A stretch of 64,000 bases of DNA from Paragordius varius. Lineage: Eukaryota > Animalia > Nematomorpha. Shown here one piece after another: positions 32,614 to 51,986 of this stretch. Below the pieces are notes generated by a model, which was not told the DNA's origin, made no database searches, and saw only the letters and a list, made by a program, of their open reading frames with translations. The stretch covers positions 4,092,001-4,156,000 of the forward strand of contig OZ176057.1 in assembly GCA_964247055.1 (NCBI GenBank), in the 5' to 3' direction. The translations under genes were made by a program, and so were the position numbers. The first letter of the stretch is position 1. Each line of letters starts with the position of its first letter.

Positions 32614-35600
32614 CTAATAATAAAACGAAAGGAAATTGTTATAAATTTAACCCGTTTTCAAAGTGAATATTGAACAAACTAGCATATTGCTTCTATGATA
32701 GTTAGCGTCTTTTACATGCCTTAGGTAATTACTTTTGGAATATACCCGGAAGTCCTGTTGTAATACAAAACAAGTTAATGGCAGATTAACAACGAAAAAT
32801 CAAAGTTTGTGGTAATATAAAATCCCTTTATATTGATTTGTTTACAAATAAATTAATATCCACTCACTTATCATTTATTGGTCCTTATTTACCCGATTCG
32901 AGAAAATCCGCACTTTTTTAAGAGCAAAACCTCCCAGTTTTTCCTTAAATATTTTACACTATCATTACTATTCTTTAATTAAAATTTGTTTTTGTCCCCA
33001 AATTAAGACAAATTATGTTAAGCTTCCCCACAGGTCTTTGATGAAAAGGACAAATAATCTTTCCAGTCATTAATTATTGCAAAGTGCTTTTTTTAAATTT
33101 GGATCCAAACAAGCTTAAAATCTTCTCCTCAGAGTTAAACCTTTTTTTATTGATTAATAAGGGACATGTTTAGTGTAATGACATTTATAGAGTTACTGAA
33201 AATGAATGAAAATTGGTGGTGAATTAAGTCATTTTAAATAATGTATTAAAAATTTTGACTAGTTGCTTCAATTATATTCCACACTAAATATATAATATCA
33301 GCCCGGTATATTTTTGATGAAGTAACAGACATGCTAAATCTATTTTTTTCAATTCAAGAGTTGGGTTTAAATTAAACACTTTTTACATCAAAAATAATAT
33401 TAAAGTTTGGTGTTAAAATTATAAATTTGATCGTATTCGACATAAGGAGATATAAAAGTCTTTTAAACTGGTGTTCATATTTTTATATAATTTTATATAT
33501 TCATTCAAGGAACTAACCTTTAGACCTTCCAAATTTTGGGGTGCTGCTCGTGAATAAAGGCATAATCATTGGTAAATTACAAATTCGGATTCTAATGTTG
33601 AAGTAGTATAAAAAATATCATTATGGCTCATAAACATACATAATTTAAAATTGATGTGTGATATGGCAAAGTTTAGAATGCACTTTTGATAAAATTTAGA
33701 ATTATATATTACATTAAAAATATATATCTAATGGTAGGCCGTCAGCAATTGCTATCATTTATCCAGCTTATGACCGTTCATCTTGGTGGTATCCTCTATA
33801 ATTAACTGTAACTTTTATCTTAATTTATTGTTATTAATACCTTCTCAGTTATCGACTTTAGCATATCCTTTTAAGTAGTTTAGTTTGTTATCCTTTAAGC
33901 CTAATTTAAGATTTTCGCCCTTATTTTTGATTAACCTACAGTGTGGCTATGCGAAGTATGAAGGTAACTTAAGCGATCGCCAGTATTATAAAAATAAAAA
34001 AATATTATCTCAAAGGGAGATACAGGTCTAATTCCATATATAGCCAAAAGTTCAAAAATCACGTTTTCCTGTTATGTTAAATTAAATCAGAAATTTCAAA
34101 CATATGGCCCCCATGGTACATTCTGTCCGCTCAGAAAAATACCAAATAAATTATTTTGCAACTTTGAAATTATAATCTACCTTTTCCTTACAAATTATTG
34201 TTTTTGAATATTCATATTTATATATTTGGAAAAATAATAACTATAGCTTGAATTACCTTATCATTGATTAAATGTTAGGCCGACCATATTTTCCTATATA
34301 AATTATTAAATTACAACTTTCAATTTATAATTGATTTTAAATAACATTTTCATACTTTGCAGTTTAATAAAATCGAGTAAAAAAGTATAGCGGTCTTTTA
34401 ACAAAATTAGTCTATATGTTTTTACGTTTTCTATGTATTCCAACTTTTAATATGGATCATTTTTAAGAAAATTTTGGCCTTTAAGACACAAATATATGAA
34501 ATTATTGATAATTAAAAATATTATTTGAAAAATATATTTTAAGCTCTGTGATTTAATACCCGACAATTCAAATTATTAATTTATAAAATTTTTAAAATCC
34601 TAAATAAAACCTAAACATATCCCAAAATTTTTTATGATGTTAGGAAAGGGACCAATATTTATATCAGAAAGGGATTCAAAACAGTATTATATATATATAT
34701 ATATATACCATTTACAGTTCAAATTCACCCTTGAACAATTCAAATTCCCCCTTGAAAAATTCAAATCACCCTCCAATAATTCAAATTCACCCTCCTTAAA
34801 CAATTCAAATTCACTCTAAAAATAAATTATGTGTGTTTTCGAATTAATATAACTCATTATATTAATATAAAATATATCTTAGGCATAATTTATTATTTTT
34901 TTAGTATTATTTTAATTTAAAAGATTAATTTTATTTTTTATATAAAAATAGAGGTAATTTGTAATCCTAAAAAAATAAAATGTATTTGAGGGTGAATAAT
35001 TGTTTAAGGCAGGGAACAGGAACCACGCGGAACCGGAACCGGTTCCTGGGATTTTATTAAGAACCGGTTCCATTGGAATGGAACCGACGCGGTCCCGGTT
35101 CCACTCTCCGGGAACAACGCCGGTACCGATTCCAAAATCTCAGGCCCTGGTTCTATCTATAAATGTGAACCAAACCGGTTCCGGTTCCAACCGTTCAGGA
35201 ACCAAACCGATTCTGGTTCCACCCCCTTAATTACTGTTTCCCATATGATTTTCATAAAAATTTTATTTTATTATTTAAATTAGATTGTACCACTACACAT
35301 TACAACATACCTCAAACCTAAAACTAAGCGGCTAATATTAGCGATATTCCTCTCCAAATTTTAGACGATCCTGCTCTTCTGTAAAAACTAAGTCATAATT
35401 CAAGTTTATTTATAACACAGTGCGCCCAAAAAAATAAACAAACGTGATTTTTATCTAGAATAATAAGATATCCCTTGGAAAAGGAGACCCCAAAAATTTT
35501 GGGGCAAAAATGCGCCCCAAAATGGAAATATTCCATTTTTTCATTTTTGACTAGAAATAGATTTTTGTCCATATTTTTAATACTTATTGAGCAAACATGA

Positions 35601-35726
35601 TAGAACTTTTATATATTATAAACCTAATATATTCTTAAGAAAAATTCGTAAAATTATTTTAGAGTATCAATAATTCTTTTTATTCCACAAAAATAGAAAT
35701 TCGTAAATTTTATGACATTGTCGAAA

Positions 35727-38700
35727 TCTATATATTTATAAAAATGGAAAATGCTGGCTTTGTGATCTGGTACAGGAAAATTGGTAGACCCAATCTAATC
35801 CAAATATCGAAAAAATATAATCAATAATGAATGCCCCGACAATAGCTTCGCCCTTTTTTTGAAATAGGCCCCCAGTTCGGGCCCACCCCGTATGAAAAAC
35901 GGTTTTTTTTGAAAACAGAAGTCCACAAAAATCGTGTCTTTGAGACAATTTTCCGGATAACGTGTTGGACCATTCAATTTCAAATATGATTTTTGTTTAC
36001 TTATTTTCGATTGCGCCGAACATAGCCGAGCCACTTTTTTGATTTAGGCCCTCTTTTTACCCGCTCCCCCCGTAAAATGCCACCTTTTTCAAAAAACAAA
36101 GTCCACAAAAATAATTTTTTAAATCGATTTTTCGCCCTAGGTATGAGACCGTAAAAATTCTATATGGATTCCACGTATTCCCTGTTAAAAGGCAAAAATT
36201 TTAGTCTACCGTTTATTTGATGATAGCTGCTGGGTAAGGAGCTACCCGCTAAAAACTGATTTTTCATATAACTTTGTGATCTGTTTCCGGAAAACCGGTG
36301 AACCCATTCAAATCCAAACATCGAAAAAATTTAATCATTAATGAAAGCCCCGACAATAGCTTCGCCCTTTTTTGGAATTAGGTCCCCAGTTCGGGCCCAC
36401 CCCGTGTGAAAAATGGGTTAAGTCAATTTTTTGGAGAACGTGTTGAACCATTCAATTTCAAATATGATTTTTGTTTACTTATTTTTGATCGCGCTGAACA
36501 TAGTCGACCCACTTTTTTGATTTAGACCCTTTTTTTACCCGCTACCCCCGTAAAATGCCATTTTTTTCAAAAAAAAACAAAGTCCACAAAAATATTTTTT
36601 TGATTGTATTTTTTTGTCCACGGTATGAGACTGTAAAAATTCGAGAAAGATTTTTCGTATTGCCTGTTAAAAGGCAAAAATTTTAGTCAAGCGTTTCTTT
36701 GATGATAGATGCTGAGTAAGGAGTATCTATCATATGTATAGCATGTTAAAAGATATATGGATATTAATACATTATTTATCCTCATCTATATATTTATAAA
36801 AATGGAAAATGCTGGCTTTGTGATCTGGTACAGGAAAATTGGTAGACCCAATCTAATCCAAATATCGAAAAAATATAATCAATAATGAATGCCCCGACAA
36901 TAGCTTCGCCCTTTTTTTGAAATAGGCCCCCAGTTCGGGCCCACCCCGTATGAAAAACGGTTTTTTTTTGAAAACAGAAGTCCACAAAAATCGTGTCTTT
37001 GAGACAATTTTCCGGATAACGTGTTGGACCATTCAATTTCAAATATGATTTTTGTTTACTTATTTTCGATTGCGCCGAACATAGCCGAGCCACTTTTTTG
37101 ATTTAGGCCCTCTTTTTACCCGCTCCCCCCGTAAAATGCCACCTTTTTCAAAAAACAAAGTCCACAAAAATAATTTTTTAAATCGATTTTTCGCCCTAGG
37201 TATGAGACCGTAAAAATTCTATATGGATTCCACGTATTCCCTGTTAAAAGGCAAAAATTTTAGTCTACCGTTTATTTGATGATAGCTGCTGGGTAAGGAG
37301 CTACCCGCTAAAAACTGATTTTTCATATAACTTTGTGATCTGTTTCCGGAAAACCGGTGAACCCATTCAAATCCAAACATCGAAAAAATTTAATCATTAA
37401 TGAAAGCCCCGACAATAGCTTCGCCCTTTTTTGGAATTAGGTCCCCAGTTCGGGCCCACCCCGTGTGAAAAATGGGTTAAGTCAATTTTTTGGAGAACGT
37501 GTTGAACCATTCAATTTCAAATATGATTTTTGTTTACTTATTTTTGATCGCGCTGAACATAGTCGACCCACTTTTTTGATTTAGACCCTTTTTTTACCCG
37601 CTACCCCCGTAAAATGCCATTTTTTTCAAAAAAAAACAAAGTCCACAAAAATATTTTTTTGATTGTATTTTTTTGTCCACGGTATGAGACTGTAAAAATT
37701 CGAGAAAGATTTTTCGTATTGCCTGTTAAAAGGCAAAAATTTTAGTCAAGCGTTTCTTTGATGATAGATGCTGAGTAAGGAGTATCTATCATATGTATAG
37801 CATGTTAAAAGATATATGGATATTAATACATTATTTATCCTCATCTATATATTTATAAAAATGGAAAATGCTGGCTTTGTGATCTGGTACAGGAAAATTG
37901 GTAGACCCAATCTAATCCAAATATCGAAAAAATATAATCAATAATGAATGCCCCGACAATAGCTTCGCCCTTTTTTTGAAATAGGCCCCCAGTTCGGGCC
38001 CACCCCGTATGAAAAACGGTTTTTTTTTGAAAACAGAAGTCCACAAAAATCGTGTCTTTGAGACAATTTTCCGGATAACGTGTTGGACCATTCAATTTCA
38101 AATATGATTTTTGTTTACTTATTTTCGATTGCGCCGAACATAGCCGAGCCACTTTTTTGATTTAGGCCCTCTTTTTACCCGCTCCCCCCGTAAAATGCCA
38201 CCTTTTTCAAAAAACAAAGTCCACAAAAATAATTTTTTAAATCGATTTTTCGCCCTAGGTATGAGACCGTAAAAATTCTATATGGATTCCACGTATTCCC
38301 TGTTAAAAGGCAAAAATTTTAGTCTACCGTTTATTTGATGATAGCTGCTGGGTAAGGAGCTACCCGCTAAAAACTGATTTTTCATATAACTTTGTGATCT
38401 GTTTCCGGAAAACCGGTGAACCCATTCAAATCCAAACATCGAAAAAATTTAATCATTAATGAAAGCCCCGACAATAGCTTCGCCCTTTTTTGGAATTAGG
38501 TCCCCAGTTCGGGCCCACCCCGTGTGAAAAATGGGTTAAGTCAATTTTTTGGAGAACGTGTTGAACCATTCAATTTCAAATATGATTTTTGTTTACTTAT
38601 TTTTGATCGCGCTGAACATAGTCGACCCACTTTTTTGATTTAGACCCTTTTTTTACCCGCTACCCCCGTAAAATGCCACCTTTTTCAAAAAACAAAGTCC

Positions 38701-41700
38701 ACAAAAATAATTTTTTAAATCGATTTTTCGCCCTAGGTATGAGACCGTAAAAATTCTATATGGATTCCACGTATTCCCTGTTAAAAGGCAAAAATTTTAG
38801 TCTACCGTTTATTTGATGATAGCTGCTGGGTAAGGAGCTACCCGCTAAAAACTGATTTTTCATATAACTTTGTGATCTGTTTCCGGAAAACCGGTGAACC
38901 CATTCAAATCCAAACATCGAAAAAATTTAATCATTAATGAAAGCCCCGACAATAGCTTCGCCCTTTTTTGGAATTAGGTCCCCAGTTCGGGCCCACCCCG
39001 TGTGAAAAATGGGTTAAGTCAATTTTTTGGAGAACGTGTTGAACCATTCAATTTCAAATATGATTTTTGTTTACTTATTTTTGATCGCGCTGAACATAGT
39101 CGACCCACTTTTTTGATTTAGACCCTTTTTTTACCCGCTACCCCCGTAAAATGCCATTTTTTTCAAAAAAAACAAAGTCCACAAAAATATTTTTTTGATT
39201 GTATTTTTTTGTCCACGGTATGAGACTGTAAAAATTCGAGAAAGATTTTTCGTATTGCCTGTTAAAAGGCAAAAATTTTAGTCAAGCGTTTCTTTGATGA
39301 TAGATGCTGAGTAAGGAGTATCTATCATATGTATAGCATGTTAAAAGATATATGGATATTAATACATTATTTATCCTCATCTATATATTTATAAAAATGG
39401 AAAATGCTGGCTTTGTGATCTGGTACAGGAAAATTGGTAGACCCAATCAAATCCAAATATCGAAAAAATATAATCATTAATGAATGCCCCGACAATAGCT
39501 TCGCCCTTTTTTTGAAATAGGCCCCCAGTTCGGGCCCACCCCGTATGAAAAACGGTTTTTTTTGAAAACAGAAGTCCACAAAAATCGTGTCTTTGAGACA
39601 ATTTTCCGGATAACGTGTTGGACCATTCAATTCCAAATATGATTTTTGTTTACTTATTTTCGATTGCGCCGAACATAGCCGAGCCACTTTTTTGATTTAG
39701 GCCCTCTTTTTACCCGCTCCCCCCGTAAAATGCCACCTTTTTCAAAAAACAAAGTCCACAAAAATAATTTTTTAAATCGATTTTTCGCCCTAGGTATGAG
39801 ACCGTAAAAATTCTATATGGATTCCACGTATTCCCTGTTAAAAGGCAAAAATTTTAGTCTACCGTTTATTTGATGATAGCTGCTGGGTAAGGAGCTACCC
39901 GCTAAAAACTGATTTTTCATATAACTTTGTGATCTGTTTCCGGAAAACCGGTGAACCCATTCAAATCCAAACCTCGAAAAAATTTAATCATTAATGAAAG
40001 CCCCGACAATAGCTTCGCCCTTTTTTGGAATTAGGTCCCCAGTTCGGGCCCACCCCGTGTGAAAAATGGGTTAAGTCAATTTTTTGGAGAACGTGTTGAA
40101 CCATTCAATTTCAAATATGATTTTTGTTTACTTATTTTTGATCGCGCTGAACATAGTCGACCCACTTTTTTGATTTAGACCCTTTTTTTACCCGCTACCC
40201 CCGTAAAATGCCACCTTTTTCAAAAAACAAAGTCCACAAAAATAATTTTTTAAATCGATTTTTCGCCCTAGGTATGAGACCGTAAAAATTCTATATGGAT
40301 TCCACGTATTCCCTGTTAAAAGGCAAAAATTTTAGTCTACCGTTTATTTGATGATAGCTGCTGGGTAAGGAGCTACCCGCTAAAAACTGATTTTTCATAT
40401 AACTTTGTGATCTGTTTCCGGAAAACCGGTGAACCCATTCAAATCCAAACATCGAAAAAATTTAATCATTAATGAAAGCCCCGACAATAGCTTCGCCCTT
40501 TTTTGGAATTAGGTCCCCAGTTCGGGCCCACCCCGTGTGAAAAATGGGTTAAGTCAATTTTTTGGAGAACGTGTTGAACCATTCAATTTCAAATATGATT
40601 TTTGTTTACTTATTTTTGATCGCGCTGAACATAGTCGACCCACTTTTTTGATTTAGACCCTTTTTTTACCCGCTACCCCCGTAAAATGCCACCTTTTTCA
40701 AAAAACAAAGTCCACAAAAATAATTTTTTAAATCGATTTTTCGCCCTAGGTATGAGACCGTAAAAATTCTATATGGATTCCACGTATTCCCTGTTAAAAG
40801 GCAAAAATTTTAGTCTACCGTTTATTTGATGATAGCTGCTGGGTAAGGAGCTACCCGCTAAAAACTGATTTTTCATATAACTTTGTGATCTGTTTCCGGA
40901 AAACCGGTGAACCCATTCAAATCCAAACATCGAAAAAATTTAATCATTAATGAAAGCCCCGACAATAGCTTCGCCCTTTTTTGGAATTAGGTCCCCAGTT
41001 CGGGCCCACCCCGTGTGAAAAATGGGTTAAGTCAATTTTTTGGAGAACGTGTTGAACCATTCAATTTCAAATATGATTTTTGTTTACTTATTTTTGATCT
41101 CGCTGAACATAGTCGACCCACTTTTTTGATTTAGACCCTTTTTTTACCCGCTACCCCCGTAAAATGCCATTTTTTTCAAAAAAAACAAAGTCCACAAAAA
41201 TATTTTTTTGATTGTATTTTTTTGTCCACGGTATGAGACTGTAAAAATTCGAGAAAGATTTTTCGTATTGCCTGTTAAAAGGCAAAAATTTTAGTCAAGC
41301 GTTTCTTTGATGATAGATGCTGAGTAAGGAGTATCTATCATATGTATAGCATGTTAAAAGATATATGGATATTAATACATTATTTATCCTCATCTATATA
41401 TTTATAAAAATGGAAAATGCTGGCTTTGTGATCTGGTACAGGAAAATTGGTAGACCCAATCAAATCCAAATATCGAAAAAATATAATCATTAATGAATGC
41501 CCCGACAATAGCTTCGCCCTTTTTTTGAAATAGGCCCCCAGTTCGGGCCCACCCCGTATGAAAAACGGTTTTTTTTTGAAAACAGAAGTCCACAAAAATC
41601 GTGTCTTTGAGACAATTTTCCGGATAACGTGTTGGACCATTCAATTTCAAATATGATTTTTGTTTACTTATTTTCGATTGCGCCGAACATAGCCGAGCCA

Positions 41701-44700
41701 CTTTTTTGATTTAGGCCCTCTTTTTACCCGCTCCCCCCGTAAAATGCCACCTTTTTCAAAAAACAAAGTCCACAAAAATAATTTTTTAAATCGATTTTTC
41801 GCCCTAGGTATGAGACCGTAAAAATTCTATATGGATTCCACGTATTCCCTGTTAAAAGGCAAAAATTTTAGTCTACCGTTTATTTGATGATAGCTGCTGG
41901 GTAAGGAGCTACCCGCTAAAAACTGATTTTTCATATAACTTTGTGATTTTCCGGAAAACCGGTGAACCCATTCAAATCCAAACATCGAAAAAATTTAATC
42001 ATTAATGAAAGCCCCGACAATAGCTTCGCCCTTTTTTGGAATTAGGTCCCCAGTTCGGGCCCACCCCGTGTGAAAAATGGGTTAAGTCAATTTTTTGGAG
42101 AACGTGTTGAACCATTCAATTTCAAATATGATTTTTGTTTACTTATTTTTGATCGCGCTGAACATAGTCGACCCACTTTTTTGATTTAGACCCTTTTTTT
42201 ACCCGCTACCCCCGTAAAATGCCACCTTTTTCAAAAAACAAAGTCCACAAAAATAATTTTTTAAATCGATTTTTCGCCCTAGGTATGAGACCGTAAAAAT
42301 TCTATATGGATTCCACGTATTCCCTGTTAAAAGGCAAAAATTTTAGTCTACCGTTTATTTGATGATAGCTGCTGGGTAAGGAGCTACCCGCTAAAAACTG
42401 ATTTTTCATATAACTTTGTGATCTGTTTCCGGAAAACCGGTGAACCCATTCAAATCCAAACATCGAAAAAATTTAATCATTAATGAAAGCCCCGACAATA
42501 GCTTCGCCCTTTTTTGGAATTAGGTCCCCAGTTCGGGCCCACCCCGTGTGAAAAATGGGTTAAGTCAATTTTTTGGAGAACGTGTTGAACCATTCAATTT
42601 CAAATATGATTTTTGTTTACTTATTTTTGATCGCGCTGAACATAGTCGACCCACTTTTTTGATTTAGACCCTTTTTTTACCCGCTACCCCCGTAAAATGC
42701 CATTTTTTTCAAAAAAAAACAAAGTCCACAAAAATATTTTTTTGATTGTATTTTTTTGTCCACGGTATGAGACTGTAAAAATTCGAGAAAGATTTTTCGT
42801 ATTGCCTGTTAAAAGGCAAAAATTTTAGTCAAGCGTTTCTTTGATGATAGATGCTGAGTAAGGAGTATCTATCATATGTATAGCATGTTAAAAGATATAT
42901 GGATATTAATACATTATTTATCCTCATCTATATATTTATAAAAATGGAAAATGCTGGCTTTGTGATCTGGTACAGGAAAATTGGTAGACCCAATCAAATC
43001 CAAATATCGAAAAAATATAATCATTAATGAATGCCCCGACAATAGCTTCGCCCTTTTTTTGAAATAGGCCCCCAGTTCGGGCCCACCCCGTATGAAAAAC
43101 GGTTTTTTTTTGAAAACAGAAGTCCACAAAAATCGTGTCTTTGAGACAATTTTCCGGATAACGTGTTGGACCATTCAATTCCAAATATGATTTTTGTTTA
43201 CTTATTTTCGATTGCGCCGAACATAGCCGAGCCACTTTTTTGATTTAGGCCCTCTTTTTACCCGCTCCCCCCGTAAAATGCCACCTTTTTCAAAAAACAA
43301 AGTCCACAAAAATAATTTTTTAAATCGATTTTTCGCCCTAGGTATGAGACCGTAAAAATTCTATATGGATTCCACGTATTCCCTGTTAAAAGGCAAAAAT
43401 TTTAGTCTACCGTTTATTTGATGATAGCTGCTGGGTAAGGAGCTACCCGCTAAAAACTGATTTTTCATATAACTTTGTGATCTGTTTCCGGAAAACCGGT
43501 GAACCCATTCAAATCCAAACATCGAAAAAATTTAATCATTAATGAAAGCCCCGACAATAGCTTCGCCCTTTTTTGGAATTAGGTCCCCAGTTCGGGCCCA
43601 CCCCGTGTGAAAAATGGGTTAAGTCAATTTTTTGGAGAACGTGTTGAACCATTCAATTTCAAATATGATTTTTGTTTACTTATTTTTGATCGCGCTGAAC
43701 ATAGTCGACCCACTTTTTTGATTTAGACCCTTTTTTTACCCGCTACCCCCGTAAAATGCCACCTTTTTCAAAAAACAAAGTCCACAAAAATATTTTTTTG
43801 ATTGTATTTTTTTGTCCACGGTATGAGACTGTAAAAATTCGAGAAAGATTTTTCGTATTGCCTGTTAAAAGGCAAAAATTTTAGTCAAGCGTTTCTTTGA
43901 TGATAGATGCTGAGTAAGGAGTATCTATCATATGTATAGCATGTTAAAAGATATATGGATATTAATACATTATTTATCCTCATCTATATATTTATAAAAA
44001 TGGAAAATGCTGGCTTTGTGATCTGGTACAGGAAAATTGGTAGACCCAATCAAATCCAAATATCGAAAAAATATAATCATTAATGAATGCCCCGACAATA
44101 GCTTCGCCCTTTTTTTGAAATAGGCCCCCAGTTCGGGCCCACCCCGTATGAAAAACGGTTTTTTTTTGAAAACAGAAGTCCACAAAAATCGTGTCTTTGA
44201 GACAATTTTCCGGATAACGTGTTGGACCATTCAATTCCAAATATGATTTTTGTTTACTTATTTTCGATTGCGCCGAACATAGCCGAGCCACTTTTTTGAT
44301 TTAGGCCCTCTTTTTACCCGCTCCCCCCGTAAAATGCCACCTTTTTCAAAAAACAAAGTCCACAAAAATAATTTTTTAAATCGATTTTTCGCCCTAGGTA
44401 TGAGACCGTAAAAATTCTATATGGATTCCACGTATTCCCTGTTAAAAGGCAAAAATTTTAGTCTACCGTTTATTTGATGATAGCTGCTGGGTAAGGAGCT
44501 ACCCGCTAAAAACTGATTTTTCATATAACTTTGTGATCTGTTTCCGGAAAACCGGTGAACCCATTCAAATCCAAACATCGAAAAAATTTAATCATTAATG
44601 AAAGCCCCGACAATAGCTTCGCCCTTTTTTGGAATTAGGTCCCCAGTTCGGGCCCACCCCGTGTGAAAAATGGGTTAAGTCAATTTTTTGGAGAACGTGT

Positions 44701-47700
44701 TGAACCATTCAATTTCAAATATGATTTTTGTTTACTTATTTTTGATCGCGCTGAACATAGTCGACCCACTTTTTTGATTTAGACCCTTTTTTTACCCGCT
44801 ACCCCCGTAAAATGCCACCTTTTTCAAAAAACAAAGTCCACAAAAATAATTTTTTAAATCGATTTTTCGCCCTAGGTATGAGACCGTAAAAATTCTATAT
44901 GGATTCCACGTATTCCCTGTTAAAAGGCAAAAATTTTAGTCTACCGTTTATTTGATGATAGCTGCTGGGTAAGGAGCTACCCGCTAAAAACTGATTTTTC
45001 ATATAACTTTGTGATCTGTTTCCGGAAAACCGGTGAACCCATTCAAATCCAAACATCGAAAAAATTTAATCATTAATGAAAGCCCCGACAATAGCTTCGC
45101 CCTTTTTTGGAATTAGGTCCCCAGTTCGGGCCCACCCCGTGTGAAAAATGGGTTAAGTCAATTTTTTGGAGAACGTGTTGAACCATTCAATTTCAAATAT
45201 GATTTTTGTTTACTTATTTTTGATCGCGCTGAACATAGTCGACCCACTTTTTTGATTTAGACCCTTTTTTTACCCGCTACCCCCGTAAAATGCCATTTTT
45301 TTCAAAAAAAAACAAAGTCCACAAAAATATTTTTTTGATTGTATTTTTTTGTCCACGGTATGAGACTGTAAAAATTCGAGAAAGATTTTTCGTATTGCCT
45401 GTTAAAAGGCAAAAATTTTAGTCAAGCGTTTCTTTGATGATAGATGCTGAGTAAGGAGTATCTATCATATGTATAGCATGTTAAAAGATATATGGATATT
45501 AATACATTATTTATCCTCATCTATATATTTATAAAAATGGAAAATGCTGGCTTTGTGATCTGGTACAGGAAAATTGGTAGACCCAATCAAATCCAAATAT
45601 CGAAAAAATATAATCATTAATGAATGCCCCGACAATAGCTTCGCCCTTTTTTTGAAATAGGTCCCCAGTTCGGGCCCACCCCGTGTGAAAAATGGGTTAA
45701 GTCAATTTTTTGGAGAACGTGTTGAACCATTCAATTTCAAATATGATTTTTGTTTACTTATTTTTGATCGCGCTGAACATAGTCGACCCACTTTTTTGAT
45801 TTAGACCCTTTTTTTACCCGCTACCCCCGTAAAATGCCACCTTTTTCAAAAAACAAAGTCCACAAAAATAATTTTTTAAATCGATTTTTCGCCCTAGGTA
45901 TGAGACCGTAAAAATTCTATATGGATTCCACGTATTCCCTGTTAAAAGGCAAAAATTTTAGTCTACCGTTTATTTGATGATAGCTGCTGGGTAAGGAGCT
46001 ACCCGCTAAAAACTGATTTTTCATATAACTTTGTGATCTGTTTCCGGAAAACCGGTGAACCCATTCAAATCCAAACATCGAAAAAATTTAATCATTAATG
46101 AAAGCCCCGACAATAGCTTCGCCCTTTTTTGGAATTAGGTCCCCAGTTCGGGCCCACCCCGTGTGAAAAATGGGTTAAGTCAATTTTTTGGAGAACGTGT
46201 TGAACCATTCAATTTCAAATATGATTTTTGTTTACTTATTTTTGATCTCGCTGAACATAGTCGACCCACTTTTTTGATTTAGACCCTTTTTTTACCCGCT
46301 ACCCCCGTAAAATGCCATTTTTTTCAAAAAAAACAAAGTCCACAAAAATATTTTTTTGATTGTATTTTTTTGTCCACGGTATGAGACTGTAAAAATTCGA
46401 GAAAGAATTTTCGTATTGCCTGTTAAAAGGCAAAAATTTTAGTCAAGCGTTTCTTTGATGATAGATGCTGAGTAAGGAGTATCTATCATATGTATAGCAT
46501 GTTAAAAGATATATGGATATTAATACATTATTTATCCTCATCTATATATTTATAAAAATGGAAAATGCTGGCTTTGTGATCTGGTACAGGAAAATTGGTA
46601 GACCCAATCAAATCCAAATATCGAAAAAATATAATCATTAATGAATGCCCCGACAATAGCTTCGCCTTTTTTTGAAATAGGCCCCCAGTTCGGGCCCACC
46701 CCGTATGAAAAACGGTTTTTTTTTGAAAACAGAAGTCCACAAAAATCGTGTCTTTGAGACAATTTTCCGGATAACGTGTTGGACCATTCAATTTCAAATA
46801 TGATTTTTGTTTACTTATTTTCGATTGCGCCGAACATAGCCGAGCCACTTTTTTGATTTAGGCCCTCTTTTTACCCGCTCCCCCCGTAAAATGCCACCTT
46901 TTTCAAAAAACAAAGTCCACAAAAATAATTTTTTAAATCGATTTTTCGCCCTAGGTATGAGACCGTAAAAATTCTATATGGATTCCACGTATTCCCTGTT
47001 AAAAGGCAAAAATTTTAGTCTACCGTTTATTTGATGATAGCTGCTGGGTAAGGAGCTACCCGCTAAAAACTGATTTTTCATATAACTTTGTGATCTGTTT
47101 CCGGAAAACCGGTGAACCCATTCAAATCCAAACATCGAAAAAATTTAATCATTAATGAAAGCCCCGACAATAGCTTCGCCCTTTTTTGGAATTAGGTCCC
47201 CAGTTCGGGCCCACCCCGTGTGAAAAATGGGTTAAGTCAATTTTTTGGAGAACGTGTTGAACCATTCAATTTCAAATATGATTTTTGTTTACTTATTTTT
47301 GATCGCGCTGAACATAGTCGACCCACTTTTTTGATTTAGACCCTTTTTTTACCCGCTACCCCCGTAAAATGCCACCTTTTTCAAAAAACAAAGTCCACAA
47401 AAATAATTTTTTAAATCGATTTTTCGCCCTAGGTATGAGACCGTAAAAATTCTATATGGATTCCACGTATTCCCTGTTAAAAGGCAAAAATTTTAGTCTA
47501 CCGTTTATTTGATGATAGCTGCTGGGTAAGGAGCTACCCGCTAAAAACTGATTTTTCATATAACTTTGTGATCTGTTTCCGGAAAACCGGTGAACCCATT
47601 CAAATCCAAACATCGAAAAAATTTAATCATTAATGAAAGCCCCGACAATAGCTTCGCCCTTTTTTGGAATTAGGTCCCCAGTTCGGGCCCACCCCGTGTG

Positions 47701-48960
47701 AAAAATGTGTTAAGTCAATTTTTTGGAGAACGTGTTGAACCATTCAATTTCAAATATGATTTTTGTTTACTTATTTTTGATCGCGCTGAACATAGTCGAC
47801 CCACTTTTTTGATTTAGACCCTTTTTTTACCCGCTACCCCCGTAAAATGCCATTTTTTTTAAAAAAAAAACAAAGTCCACAAAAATATTTTTTTGATTGT
47901 ATTTTTTTGTCCACGGTATGAGACTGTAAAAATTCGAGAAAGATTTTTCGTATTGCCTGTTAAAAGGCAAAAATTTTAGTCAAGCGTTTCTTTGATGATA
48001 GATGCTGAGTAAGGAGTATCTATCATATGTATAGCATGTTAAAAGATATATGGATATTAATACATTATTTATCCTCATCTATATATTTATAAAAATGGAA
48101 AATGCTGGCTTTGTGATCTGGTACAGGAAAATTGGTAGACCCAATCAAATCCAAATATCGAAAAAATATAATCATTAATGAATGCCCCGACAATAGCTTC
48201 GCCCTTTTTTTGAAATAGGCCCCCAGTTCGGGCCCACCCCGTATGAAAAACGGTTTTTTTTTGAAAACAGAAGTCCACAAAAATCGTGTCTTTGAGACAA
48301 TTTTCCGGATAACGTGTTGGACCATTCAATTTCAAATATGATTTTTGTTTACTTATTTTCGATTGCGCCGAACATAGCCGAGCCACTTTTTTGATTTAGG
48401 CCCTCTTTTTACCCGCTCCCCCCGTAAAATGCCACCTTTTTCAAAAAACAAAGTCCACAAAAATAATTTTTTAAATCGATTTTTCGCCCTAGGTATGAGA
48501 CCGTAAAAATTCTATATGGATTCCACGTATTCCCTGTTAAAAGGCAAAAATTTTAGTCTACCGTTTATTTGATGATAGCTGCTGGGTAAGGAGCTACCCG
48601 CTAAAAACTGATTTTTCATATAACTTTGTGATCTGTTTCCGGAAAACCGGTGAACCCATTCAAATCCAAACATCGAAAAAATTTAATCATTAATGAAAGC
48701 CCCGACAATAGCTTCGCCCTTTTTTGGAATTAGGTCCCCAGTTCGGGCCCACCCCGTGTGAAAAATGGGTTAAGTCAATTTTTTGGAGAACGTGTTGAAC
48801 CATTCAATTTCAAATATGATTTTTGTTTACTTATTTTTGATCGCGCTGAACATAGTCGACCCACTTTTTTGATTTAGACCCTTTTTTTACCCGCTACCCC
48901 CGTAAAATGCCATTTTTATCAAAAAAAAAACAAAGTCCACAAAAATAATTTTTTAAATCT
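35727..48960 (+). repeat. Higher-order tandem array of 26 ~480-bp monomers (types A and B) in 10 units
   Basis: Unit starts at 35727, 36785, 37844, 39380, 41393, 42927, 43983, 45520, 46541, 48078 (spacings 1058, 1059, 1536, 2013, 1534, 1056, 1537, 1021, 1537). Each unit is A + 1-3 B + a ~70-100-bp linker; copies are nearly identical. Confidence 0.95.
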
Positions 48961-49106
48961 ATTTCTCCCCCAAGTAAACAATAAATTAGTATGAATGCAC
49001 CGTTTTAAGATTCCTATGAAATCATAGCTATTAAATAATTTTTCGAAATAATCCACATATGTAGATCATTTTATTGTCCCTTTTTTCAAATAACCCCCTC
49101 CCCCCA

Positions 49107-49157
49107 GAAGTCCGAAGGACTTCCTCGGGCTGCGTAGCAGCACGAGATTTACGCTAG
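49107..49157 (+). terminator. Helitron 3' terminator: two adjacent hairpins plus CTAG
   Basis: GAAGTCC-GAA-GGACTTC (49107-49123), CTCGGGCTGC-GTA-GCAGCACGAG (49124-49146), ATTTACG, CTAG (49154-49157). Confidence 0.85.
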
Positions 49158-49884
49158 TATATTATAAAAAAATTATTTGTTCCATATTGTTATTATTATT
49201 TAAGTTTCTGACTTATATATATACCAAAGAGCTGGTATATATAATAAAGGCTATGCATCTTTTTAATCCCTCAAAAAATTTGTATTTTTTAAAAAATTTC
49301 GCGATTTTTGTTGCATTTTCCTCACATGCTTCTCACTGTTTCATAAATACATTAATCCGCAATTTTCAAATGCGAATAGTGAAAAAACCAATAAAATTTC
49401 ATTATGAATTTCCCTTTACTTTGGATAAAAGTATATATATATATATTATTTAATAACATAATTAATAAATATTCAATTGCAAAATGAATAAAGACCTTTT
49501 CTGCTATATATATGGAAGGTATCATCGCCCTACAAATTTGATTAAATTAACTGAACAAATAATTACCTATTACAACATGTGCTGAGAAATTAGTTTATTA
49601 AAAGGAAATATGAGCCCACAGCAAGGTAATTATACTAATTCCGTTGGAGGGCTACAGACCAGAATGGAGAACGGTTCCATCAAACGCTCAAACATATAGA
49701 AAAAAACTATACAAGTTCCAATAGTTGGTGACTACTATTGGAATCATTTTATGTCTGACTATTATATTCATTGTGTATAAATAAATTTAAATTCATATAT
49801 GTATTTGAAGTGTTGTTGTTACTATCTTCAGATTTGAAGCTTATCGTATTATTTTCTTCAAGAAAGGCGATCGAGAGCATCATT

Positions 49885-50110
49885 AATGTTTATTTTATTA
49901 TTTGTTTGAGTGTATGGTAGCTTTTCCATGTTTGTGTGATTCTATCTATGATAGCCTCAGTTACGCCACCGTTGGCAGTAATAATGTGACCTAGTTGTTT
50001 GAATTGAACAACTGTTTTATAATCAAATTCATTGTGTATCGTATGGTTGGGAGTGTTAGAAGAGATGTTGCAGGAGCAATTGCAAACGAAGTTTGTATTT
50101 GACAATATCT
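49885..50110 (-). pseudogene. RTE-type LINE reverse transcriptase C-terminal fragment
   Basis: VVQFKQLGHIITANGGVTEAIIDRITQTWKSYHTLKQII resembles the post-RT V..FKYLG..I..NG.....I..RI..AW..F..L motif of RTE-clade LINEs; lies in the core of the foldback element. Confidence 0.65.
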
Positions 50111-51986
50111 AGATAAGACCGGAACATTTTTATTTTAAAATTTTGTAGAAACCTAATTGAATATTCCTATTGTAAAAGAATGCTAAAAATTATATCGAAT
50201 AAAATTAAATCCATTTATTATCAGTTTTTCAATATATATAATTGTAATAATTGTTTGATTTATAATTTGGCAATAGAGTTTCTGGAAGTAGATTATTTAC
50301 AAATGTCAGAATAATTTTGGTGCAAGGAAAATTCTATATTATGATCAAAAGGTCGTTAATTAAATTTATTATCTATAGATTAAATAATATATATATATAT
50401 ATATATATACTTTTATCCAAAGTAAAGGGAATTTCATAGCTTGAATTTTTTTTGGTTTTTTCAGTATTCGCATTTGAAAATTGCGGATTAATGTATTTAT
50501 GAAACAGTGGGAAGCATGTGAAGAAAATGCAACAGAAATCGCGAAAATTTTTTAAAAAATACAAATTTTTTGAGGGACTTAAAAAGATACATAGCCTTTA
50601 TTATATATAAACTCTTTGGTATGTTATATATAAGTCATAAACTTAAATAATAATAACAATATGGAGTTCTTACAAATAATTTTTTTATAATATATTTCGA
50701 CAATGTCATAAAATTTACGAATTTCTATTTTTGTGGATAAAAAAAATTATTGATACTTTAAAATAATTTTACGAATTTTTCTTAAGAATATATTAGGTTT
50801 TATATAATATATAAAAGTTTTATCATGTTTGCTCAATAAGTTTTAAAAATATGGACAAAAATCTATTTCTAGTCAAAAATGAAAAAATGGAATATTTCCA
50901 TTTTGGGGCGCATTTTTGCCCCAAAATTTTTGGGGTCTCCTTTTCCAAGGGATTTCTTATTTATTATAGATAAAAATCATGTTTGTTTATTTGTTTACCC
51001 CCCTTTTTTCGCACAGTGTAATAGATATGTTCGTATACATAGGTCTCAGTTAAAAATTTTCACCCTTAACTTCTATTTCAGACTTGAGAAGCAGTTTGAT
51101 CAGCTAATTGCTTGGTGCAATAATTTTTTAATAAAAATTAATCTCATTTTATACCTTTGTACTTATATATTTTCCTATTATATTATTATAACTTGTTTCA
51201 TTTATTATGCTCCACTATATTTCTTTCACTATACATTTGACAATTCATATTTAATTTGGTTGTATTATTATAATAATAATTTTGTGAATTATTTAATTAA
51301 AAGTCAGGAACCGAAATTGTAACCGGTTCTAATTCCACAGAACCGGTTCCAGAACCGCTTTTTATGGAATCAAGCGGTTCCGGTACCATTTGTTTAGGAA
51401 CCTCCCCGGTTCTGGTTCAAAAATTTCAGGAACCGTCCGGTTCTATTTTTAAATTCTTCAGAACCAACGCGGTTCCTGTTCCACTTGTTCAGGAACCGAC
51501 CCGGTCCCGGTTCTACTTTTTTTGAACCGGTTCCAAACCCTGGTTTAAGGGTGAATTTGAATTGTTCAAGGGTTTCGAGGTGTTTAAGGGTGAATTTGAA
51601 TTGTAAATGGTTTATATATACATATCCAAGGAGTGGTGCTCAACTGCTTTTTATGGCCCTAAATTATTTATTATATTTTTTGATGTACATTTTTTGAGTA
51701 TAAATATCTGCCAATATATCTAAGAGCTCAGAAATTTTTCATTGATATTATTAATTTACGGCTTTTGCGACAAGATAATTTTATTTGCTAAAATATTTTT
51801 TTCAAATATTTAGCCATTTAAATTGTTAAACATTTTTTACTGATTAAAATAAATTGTTTATAATATGTGCAACATTCACTCCAAATTTCGGATTCCGAAA
51901 GCTGGGGAGCTTCCCCATCCATAAAAAAGAAAACTACATTTTTGACCCAAAATTCCTTAAACTATGATATATATATATATATATAT

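Follow-up and report, generated by a model that had tools for sequence, protein, structure and literature searches.

A Helitron-derived higher-order satellite with ten 5' ends and one 3' end in Paragordius varius, and evidence that it grew locally

The window analyzed here is a 64-kb stretch of the Paragordius varius genome (C8:4092001-4156000; the AT-rich genome comprises 110.6 Mb in 44 contigs). It contains a composite non-autonomous Helitron of 13,431 bp, in which ten units that each begin with a Helitron 5' terminus (i.e., a head) are closed by one 3' terminus. The pattern counts given below are lower bounds based on exact matches, and the census of arrays and junctions was taken from the matches listed, mainly those on contigs C1 and C2. 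The features of the element are as follows, in window coordinates, with a slash marking a boundary.

35727..49157, + strand: whole composite non-autonomous Helitron (ten head-bearing units and one 3' terminus), between A35726 and T49158
35727, 36785, 37844, 39380, 41393, 42927, 43983, 45520, 46541, and 48078, + strand: starts of the ten heads, each an exact match
35727..37843, + strand: units 1 and 2, each consisting of head, A, B, and tail (1058 and 1059 bp)
36724..36784, + strand: 61-nt tail linking a unit to the next head (...TTATCCTCA/TC), which recurs at the close of units 1 to 9
35769..35794, + strand: array-private variant 26-mer in the first unit, present once per unit
37844..39379, + strand: unit 3, consisting of head, A, B, B, and tail (1536 bp)
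39380..41392, + strand: unit 4, consisting of head, A, B, B, B, and tail (2013 bp)
41393..45519, + strand: units 5 to 7, of the forms ABB, AB, and ABB (1534, 1056, and 1537 bp)
45520..46540, + strand: unit 8, consisting of an A/B hybrid monomer, B, and tail (1021 bp; query 1-173 joined to 547-894)
46541..48077, + strand: unit 9, consisting of head, A, B, B, and tail (1537 bp)
48078..49157, + strand: unit 10, consisting of head, A, partial B, and a 186-nt 3' region (1080 bp)
49107..49146, + strand: twin terminator hairpins, GAAGTCC-gaa-GGACTTC and then CTCGgGCTGC-gta-GCAGCaCGAG, from the fold of the last 68 nt
49154..49157, + strand: terminal CTAG, followed by host T49158
50694..50695, - strand: unoccupied intact A/T target in the other arm of the host inverted duplication, from the excision alignment across the junction

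The 21-nt head (TCTATATATTTATAAAAATGG) was found ten times in the window, always on the + strand and without mismatches (0.01 copies expected by chance), while the 3'-terminal 29-mer ending in CTAG was found once (49129-49157). These exact counts bear out the original prediction, made from the window alone, of ten reiterated 5' termini and a single hairpin/CTAG 3' end. The first head is preceded by ...gtcgaaA and the remaining nine by ...ttatcctcA. A unit generally comprises a head of 31 nt, an A monomer (about 515 bp, including a linker), one to three B monomers (478 bp each), and the 61-nt tail. Unit 8 is 96% identical to the other units, and its hybrid monomer has the form that unequal exchange between A and B would leave. 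In unit 10, the 186-nt 3' region substitutes for the B end and the tail. The units are thus arranged head to tail, are homogenized within the array, and are themselves composed of sub-monomers, as in a higher-order satellite.

The ends of the composite (TCTATA... at 35727 and ...CGCTAG at 49157) agree with the TC 5' end and CTRR 3' end of Helitrons, and essentially identical ends were found in 20 other copies. The twin hairpins (-15.3 kcal/mol; z = -5.1; none of 200 shuffled sequences folded equally well) stop 11 nt short of the 3' terminus, at the spacing of about 10 to 12 nt that characterizes Helitron terminators. When the element was excised in silico, the 300 nt to the left of 35727 and the 300 nt to the right of 49157 aligned continuously, across the junction, to the opposite arm of an inverted duplication in the window; the 13,431 bp therefore represent one precise A/T insertion without target duplication. 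The T/T target of Helentron/Helitron2 (DINE-1-like) elements was not found, the target being A/T in all of the copies read. On every feature that could be tested, the element is a canonical Helitron of the Helitron1 type, and its termini, hairpins, and intact, unduplicated target agree with its initial identification as a genuine Helitron of the form A/TC...hairpin-CTAG/T.

The inner inverted duplication that hosts the array pairs 35427-35726 plus 49158-49750 with about 50410-51000, and the array lies inside one arm.

The array belongs to a large family. Genome-wide, at least 1,627 heads and at least 585 3' ends were matched exactly, with no matches in reversed-pattern controls, and similar arrays are present at dozens of loci. 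Unit 10 has 20 full-length or near full-length relatives (92 to 99% identity) distributed over ten contigs; about a dozen of these copies lie in unrelated flanks, nearly all as A/TC...CTAG/T, and six directly follow the tail of another unit. The last unit had been described as having the form of a complete minimal Helitron, and the genome indeed holds a dispersed 1.08-kb non-autonomous family of identical form.

Other forms of the family were also observed. At C8:865056-872267, at least 15 successive 478-bp B monomers without heads form a pure monomer satellite. A deletion form (L041, C1:13922480-13922950) joins the first third of the tail to a C-tract and the 3' hairpins, its internal head being gone. 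At the 3' ends of the "mini" units described below (L022, L031, L021, and L038-L043), the C-tract next to the terminator hairpins differs in length among copies, from about 9 to 20 C.

Composites with two heads and one 3' end were identified at L022, L033, L034, L035, L037, and L008/L027, each with its own flanks and with A/TC...CTAG/T bounds. Their presence at six or more unrelated sites indicates that an outer head can pair with the shared terminator, and we conclude from these sequences that the two-head composites transpose. Since solo elements lack the tail and the B end, tail-bearing elements cannot arise from solo insertion, nor can the tail form anew at every site. The same bounds were found for longer arrays, such as the seven-head array L031 at C1:8.32 Mb. 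Of the 86 exact 3' ends on contig C1, 19 lie downstream of exact tail junctions (1 to 14 of them), and 4 others have a variant tail.

Most of the multi-head forms belong to a lineage ending in a 150-bp "mini" unit (i.e., 85 nt of 5' end, a C-tract, and 64 nt of 3' end). A stand-alone "mini" would be a sign that the innermost head had been used, and none was found among the seven candidate ends on contig C1, four of which follow a variant tail and three of which are other deletion forms. The proposal that the heads act as alternative starts sharing one terminator stands for the outer head, as the composites illustrate, but it gains nothing for internal heads from the "mini" ends. Canonical CTAG/TC concatemer junctions had been noted as missing from the array, and they are nearly absent from the genome as well: the only one lies at L032 (C1:9227550-9231250), where two different two-head composites stand head to tail, an arrangement consistent with one composite having inserted exactly at the 5' boundary of the other.

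A 16-mer of the tail occurs 342 times in the genome, and in 98 of the 100 matches listed it is followed by GGTAA, CCTCA, or GCTCA and then by the head; the remaining 2 do not exceed the control rate. The last base of each of the three junction variants is A, the base expected at a Helitron target, which fits the self-insertion model proposed for Fusarium (discussed below). No convincing alignment was obtained between the 61-nt tail and the 3' region of solo elements. In the array at C2:6627128-6634940, all seven of the listed junctions are of the GCTCA variant. Among the matches listed, this variant occurs only there, a further sign of locus-specific homogenization.

A partner of the autonomous type was found 1.27 Mb from the array:

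C8:2816973-2828141, - strand: decayed 11.2-kb Rep+PIF1 Helitron (L046 and L047)

It opens with the exact 21-nt head preceded by A, continues with an A monomer that is 88.7% identical to that of the window, and is closed 11.2 kb from the head by the same twin hairpins and CTAG/T. The best Rep match of the genome (PF14214, 160 bits; C8:2823927-2824424, - strand) lies 3.7 kb downstream of this head, and beyond it, on the same strand, lies the strongest match of the genome to the PIF1 helicase (PF05970, 146 bits, 3 stops). The Rep/helicase element with matching termini that the original prediction called for thus exists. Both of its domains contain stop codons, and on its sequence this copy is dead. 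Genome-wide, PF14214 matches are few and are mostly short or interrupted by stop codons; Rep and PIF1 were found together at no other locus at the thresholds used in the genome profile search, and no intact RepHel gene was seen among its matches. An inverted Rep fragment was also observed near the 3' end of the partner (C8:2817195-2817719, + strand). The Rep locus examined first (C1:10590000-10599999) was rejected as a partner; it has no matching termini and only short open reading frames (ORFs).

Several lines of evidence bear on how the array reached ten units. Over the first 546 nt, identity among nine of the units (i.e., all except the hybrid unit 8) is 99.4 to 100%, and it is about 97.5% between these units and those of the array at C1:8.32 Mb. 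In a maximum-likelihood tree, the nine ordinary units form one clade (support, 100/96), whose nearest neighbors are three solo copies (L001-L003) and head 1 of the two-head composite L008. A private two-base change (AATTGG) distinguishes the array from the rest of the family: all ten units read GGAAAATTGG, while 49 other well-aligned copies from other loci read GGAAAACCGG. The variant 26-mer has exactly ten occurrences in the genome, one per array unit, and none elsewhere in 110 Mb. The assembly therefore contains neither a donor array nor a sub-element that left any of the ten heads and landed elsewhere. Within the array, variable sites are common to subsets of units (i.e., units 1 to 3; units 4, 6, and 7; and units 4 and 8), which argues for several successive duplications instead of one burst. 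Each of the long arrays seen on C1 and C2 has, among the matches listed, its own order of unit lengths.

On the basis of these results, we consider it likely that a composite founder inserted at this site and that the array then grew in place to ten units, without acting as a donor in this genome. The founder would most likely have been a small two-head composite (about 2 kb) closed by one 3' end, in which a 3'-truncated unit (head-A-B-tail) was joined at A/TC to a complete 1.08-kb element; a founder-like copy of 2.1 kb is present at C6:6000811-6002929. To judge from the Helitron mechanism, the transposase would have started at the outermost 5' end, passed the internal 5' end, and stopped at the first hairpin/CTAG, which fits the dispersed composites. 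Once the founder was in place, its direct repeats of head plus monomers would have expanded stepwise to ten units, probably by unequal exchange or replication slippage, and the same processes may have varied the number of B monomers (one to three per unit) and given rise to the single A/B hybrid. Under such local amplification of the satellite type, the ten 5' ends would be mostly a by-product. The suggestion that the satellite array itself moves as a transposon or launches sub-elements is accordingly not supported by the data for this locus, given that the private variant is confined to the ten units, that units cluster by locus, and that variants are shared by subsets of units.

Several points weigh against local growth from a small founder. 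The size of the founder is something that we infer. Gene conversion could in principle have spread the private variant through an array that arrived whole and whose donor was then lost. The size and the order of the array are those given in the assembly, and the pattern counts are exact-match lower bounds. Lastly, none of the matches listed is a parent element with other sequence following the tail, and the 61-nt tail is absent from the autonomous-type copy at C8:2816973-2828141.

Arrival of the whole ten-unit array by one Helitron transposition that used the outermost 5' end and the only 3' end would account for the exact A/TC and CTAG/T bounds at an intact target site, and multi-head composites do insert as units elsewhere. 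Under replicative Helitron transposition, a donor should persist, yet the private variant is absent from the rest of the genome; moreover, variants common to subsets of units imply that the array grew in steps, and no order of unit lengths is common to two of the long arrays seen. We therefore regard arrival in one event as unlikely.

A single burst, in which a circle lacking the terminator undergoes rolling-circle replication and the resulting concatemer is integrated, has been proposed for Helitron arrays in plants (Xiong, Dooner, and Du, 2016, as presented in PMC12628747). The architecture described there (i.e., many 5' ends, one 3' end, and truncated units) matches that of the window array, and the near identity of the units also speaks for such an origin. 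However, the same tail/head junction, in three close variants, was found at all loci among the matches listed, which points to one ancestral junction instead of independent truncations. The unit lengths within the array are unequal, and its variants are common to subsets of units instead of private to single units, although the first steps could still have been a burst. As presented in PMC12628747, the model leaves the attachment of the single genuine 3' end unexplained. In addition, the only RepHel copy seen is decayed, whereas the units are up to 100% identical. An origin of the array in a single burst thus appears improbable.

We see only a slim chance that the reiterated 5' ends were themselves active in the amplification. 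In that case, the transposase would cut at two successive internal 5' ends and free terminator-less unit circles (tail/TC), which would replicate or recombine back into the array; the Helitron enzyme would then directly drive satellite growth and could launch sub-elements from any head. An assembly artefact, in which near-identical repeats were mis-joined or expanded to give a wrong length or order, is very unlikely, since the heterogeneous unit lengths and variant patterns serve as anchors, both flanks match one continuous target, and similar arrays occur at dozens of loci, even though the units are 99 to 100% identical and the 13.4-kb array is of a size at which assemblers can err.

Outside the array, the surroundings form a nested transposon stack. 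The inverted ends of an outer element consist of 21-bp tandem repeats (ACAATTCAAATTCACCCTTGA and its complement) together with subterminal blocks rich in GGAACCGGTTCC, and parts of this element lie at the following window positions:

34714-34814 and 51543-51604: parts of the outer element
35000-35220 and 51300-51540: further parts of the outer element

An Rfam scan of 34500-51800 gave no match, and among six window ORFs outside the array, a Pfam search matched only an HCN channel N-terminal domain.

Arrays of Helitrons with many 5' ends and one 3' end were reported from 27 plant genomes (Xiong, Dooner, and Du, Plant J 2016; described in PMC12628747 and cited in PMC5148889 and PMC5876387), with copy numbers from a few to many (PMC12628747). 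As described in these sources, the plant arrays resemble the window array in consisting of 3'-truncated units, each with a 5' terminus, and one closing 3' terminus. Unlike them, as far as that description goes, the arrays examined here share one constant tail/head truncation junction among the matches listed, and the window array bears signs of stepwise local growth in place of the single burst modeled for plants.

A single 3' terminus combined with several 5' termini is also found in the FoHeli elements of Fusarium oxysporum (Chellapan et al., 2016; PMC5148889). In the model proposed for them, self-insertion comes first; the leftmost 5' end is then nicked, and the first 3' end acts as the stop (PMC5148889). 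This model fits the A/TC internal junction and the dispersed two-head composites described here, in which the internal 5' end abuts an A and the composite is delimited by the leftmost 5' end and the first 3' end. The duplicated 5' piece of FoHeli is, however, shorter than 200 bp, with one or a few repetitions (PMC5148889), whereas the repeated unit in P. varius is 1 to 2 kb long, includes monomer repeats, and reaches at least 15 copies. Helitron/Helentron elements whose central tandem repeats seed satellites are known from Drosophila (DINE-TR1) and oyster (Cg170) (PMC7492417 and PMC8268682). As in these elements, monomers (here 478 to 515 bp) lie inside a rolling-circle element, and the B monomer also occurs as a pure array. 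DINE-TR1 and Cg170 are of the Helentron/Helitron2 type and only their central repeats expand, while the P. varius family has an A/T target and canonical Helitron1 ends, and its repeated unit includes the 5' terminus itself.

The layout of many starts and one end is already published, as are both models for it; the value of the present array is that of a well-documented case and not of a new principle. New in this analysis are the intact target site, the autonomous-type partner, and the private-variant test. The array offers a clean, fully bounded animal example of a rolling-circle transposon becoming satellite DNA, in which one family is present in four forms, i.e., solo elements, two-start composites, long start-bearing arrays, and pure arrays of the 478-bp monomer. 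By means of the private-variant test, two steps can be told apart in the probable history of this array, first the movement of the composite and then growth of the array at the site of insertion.

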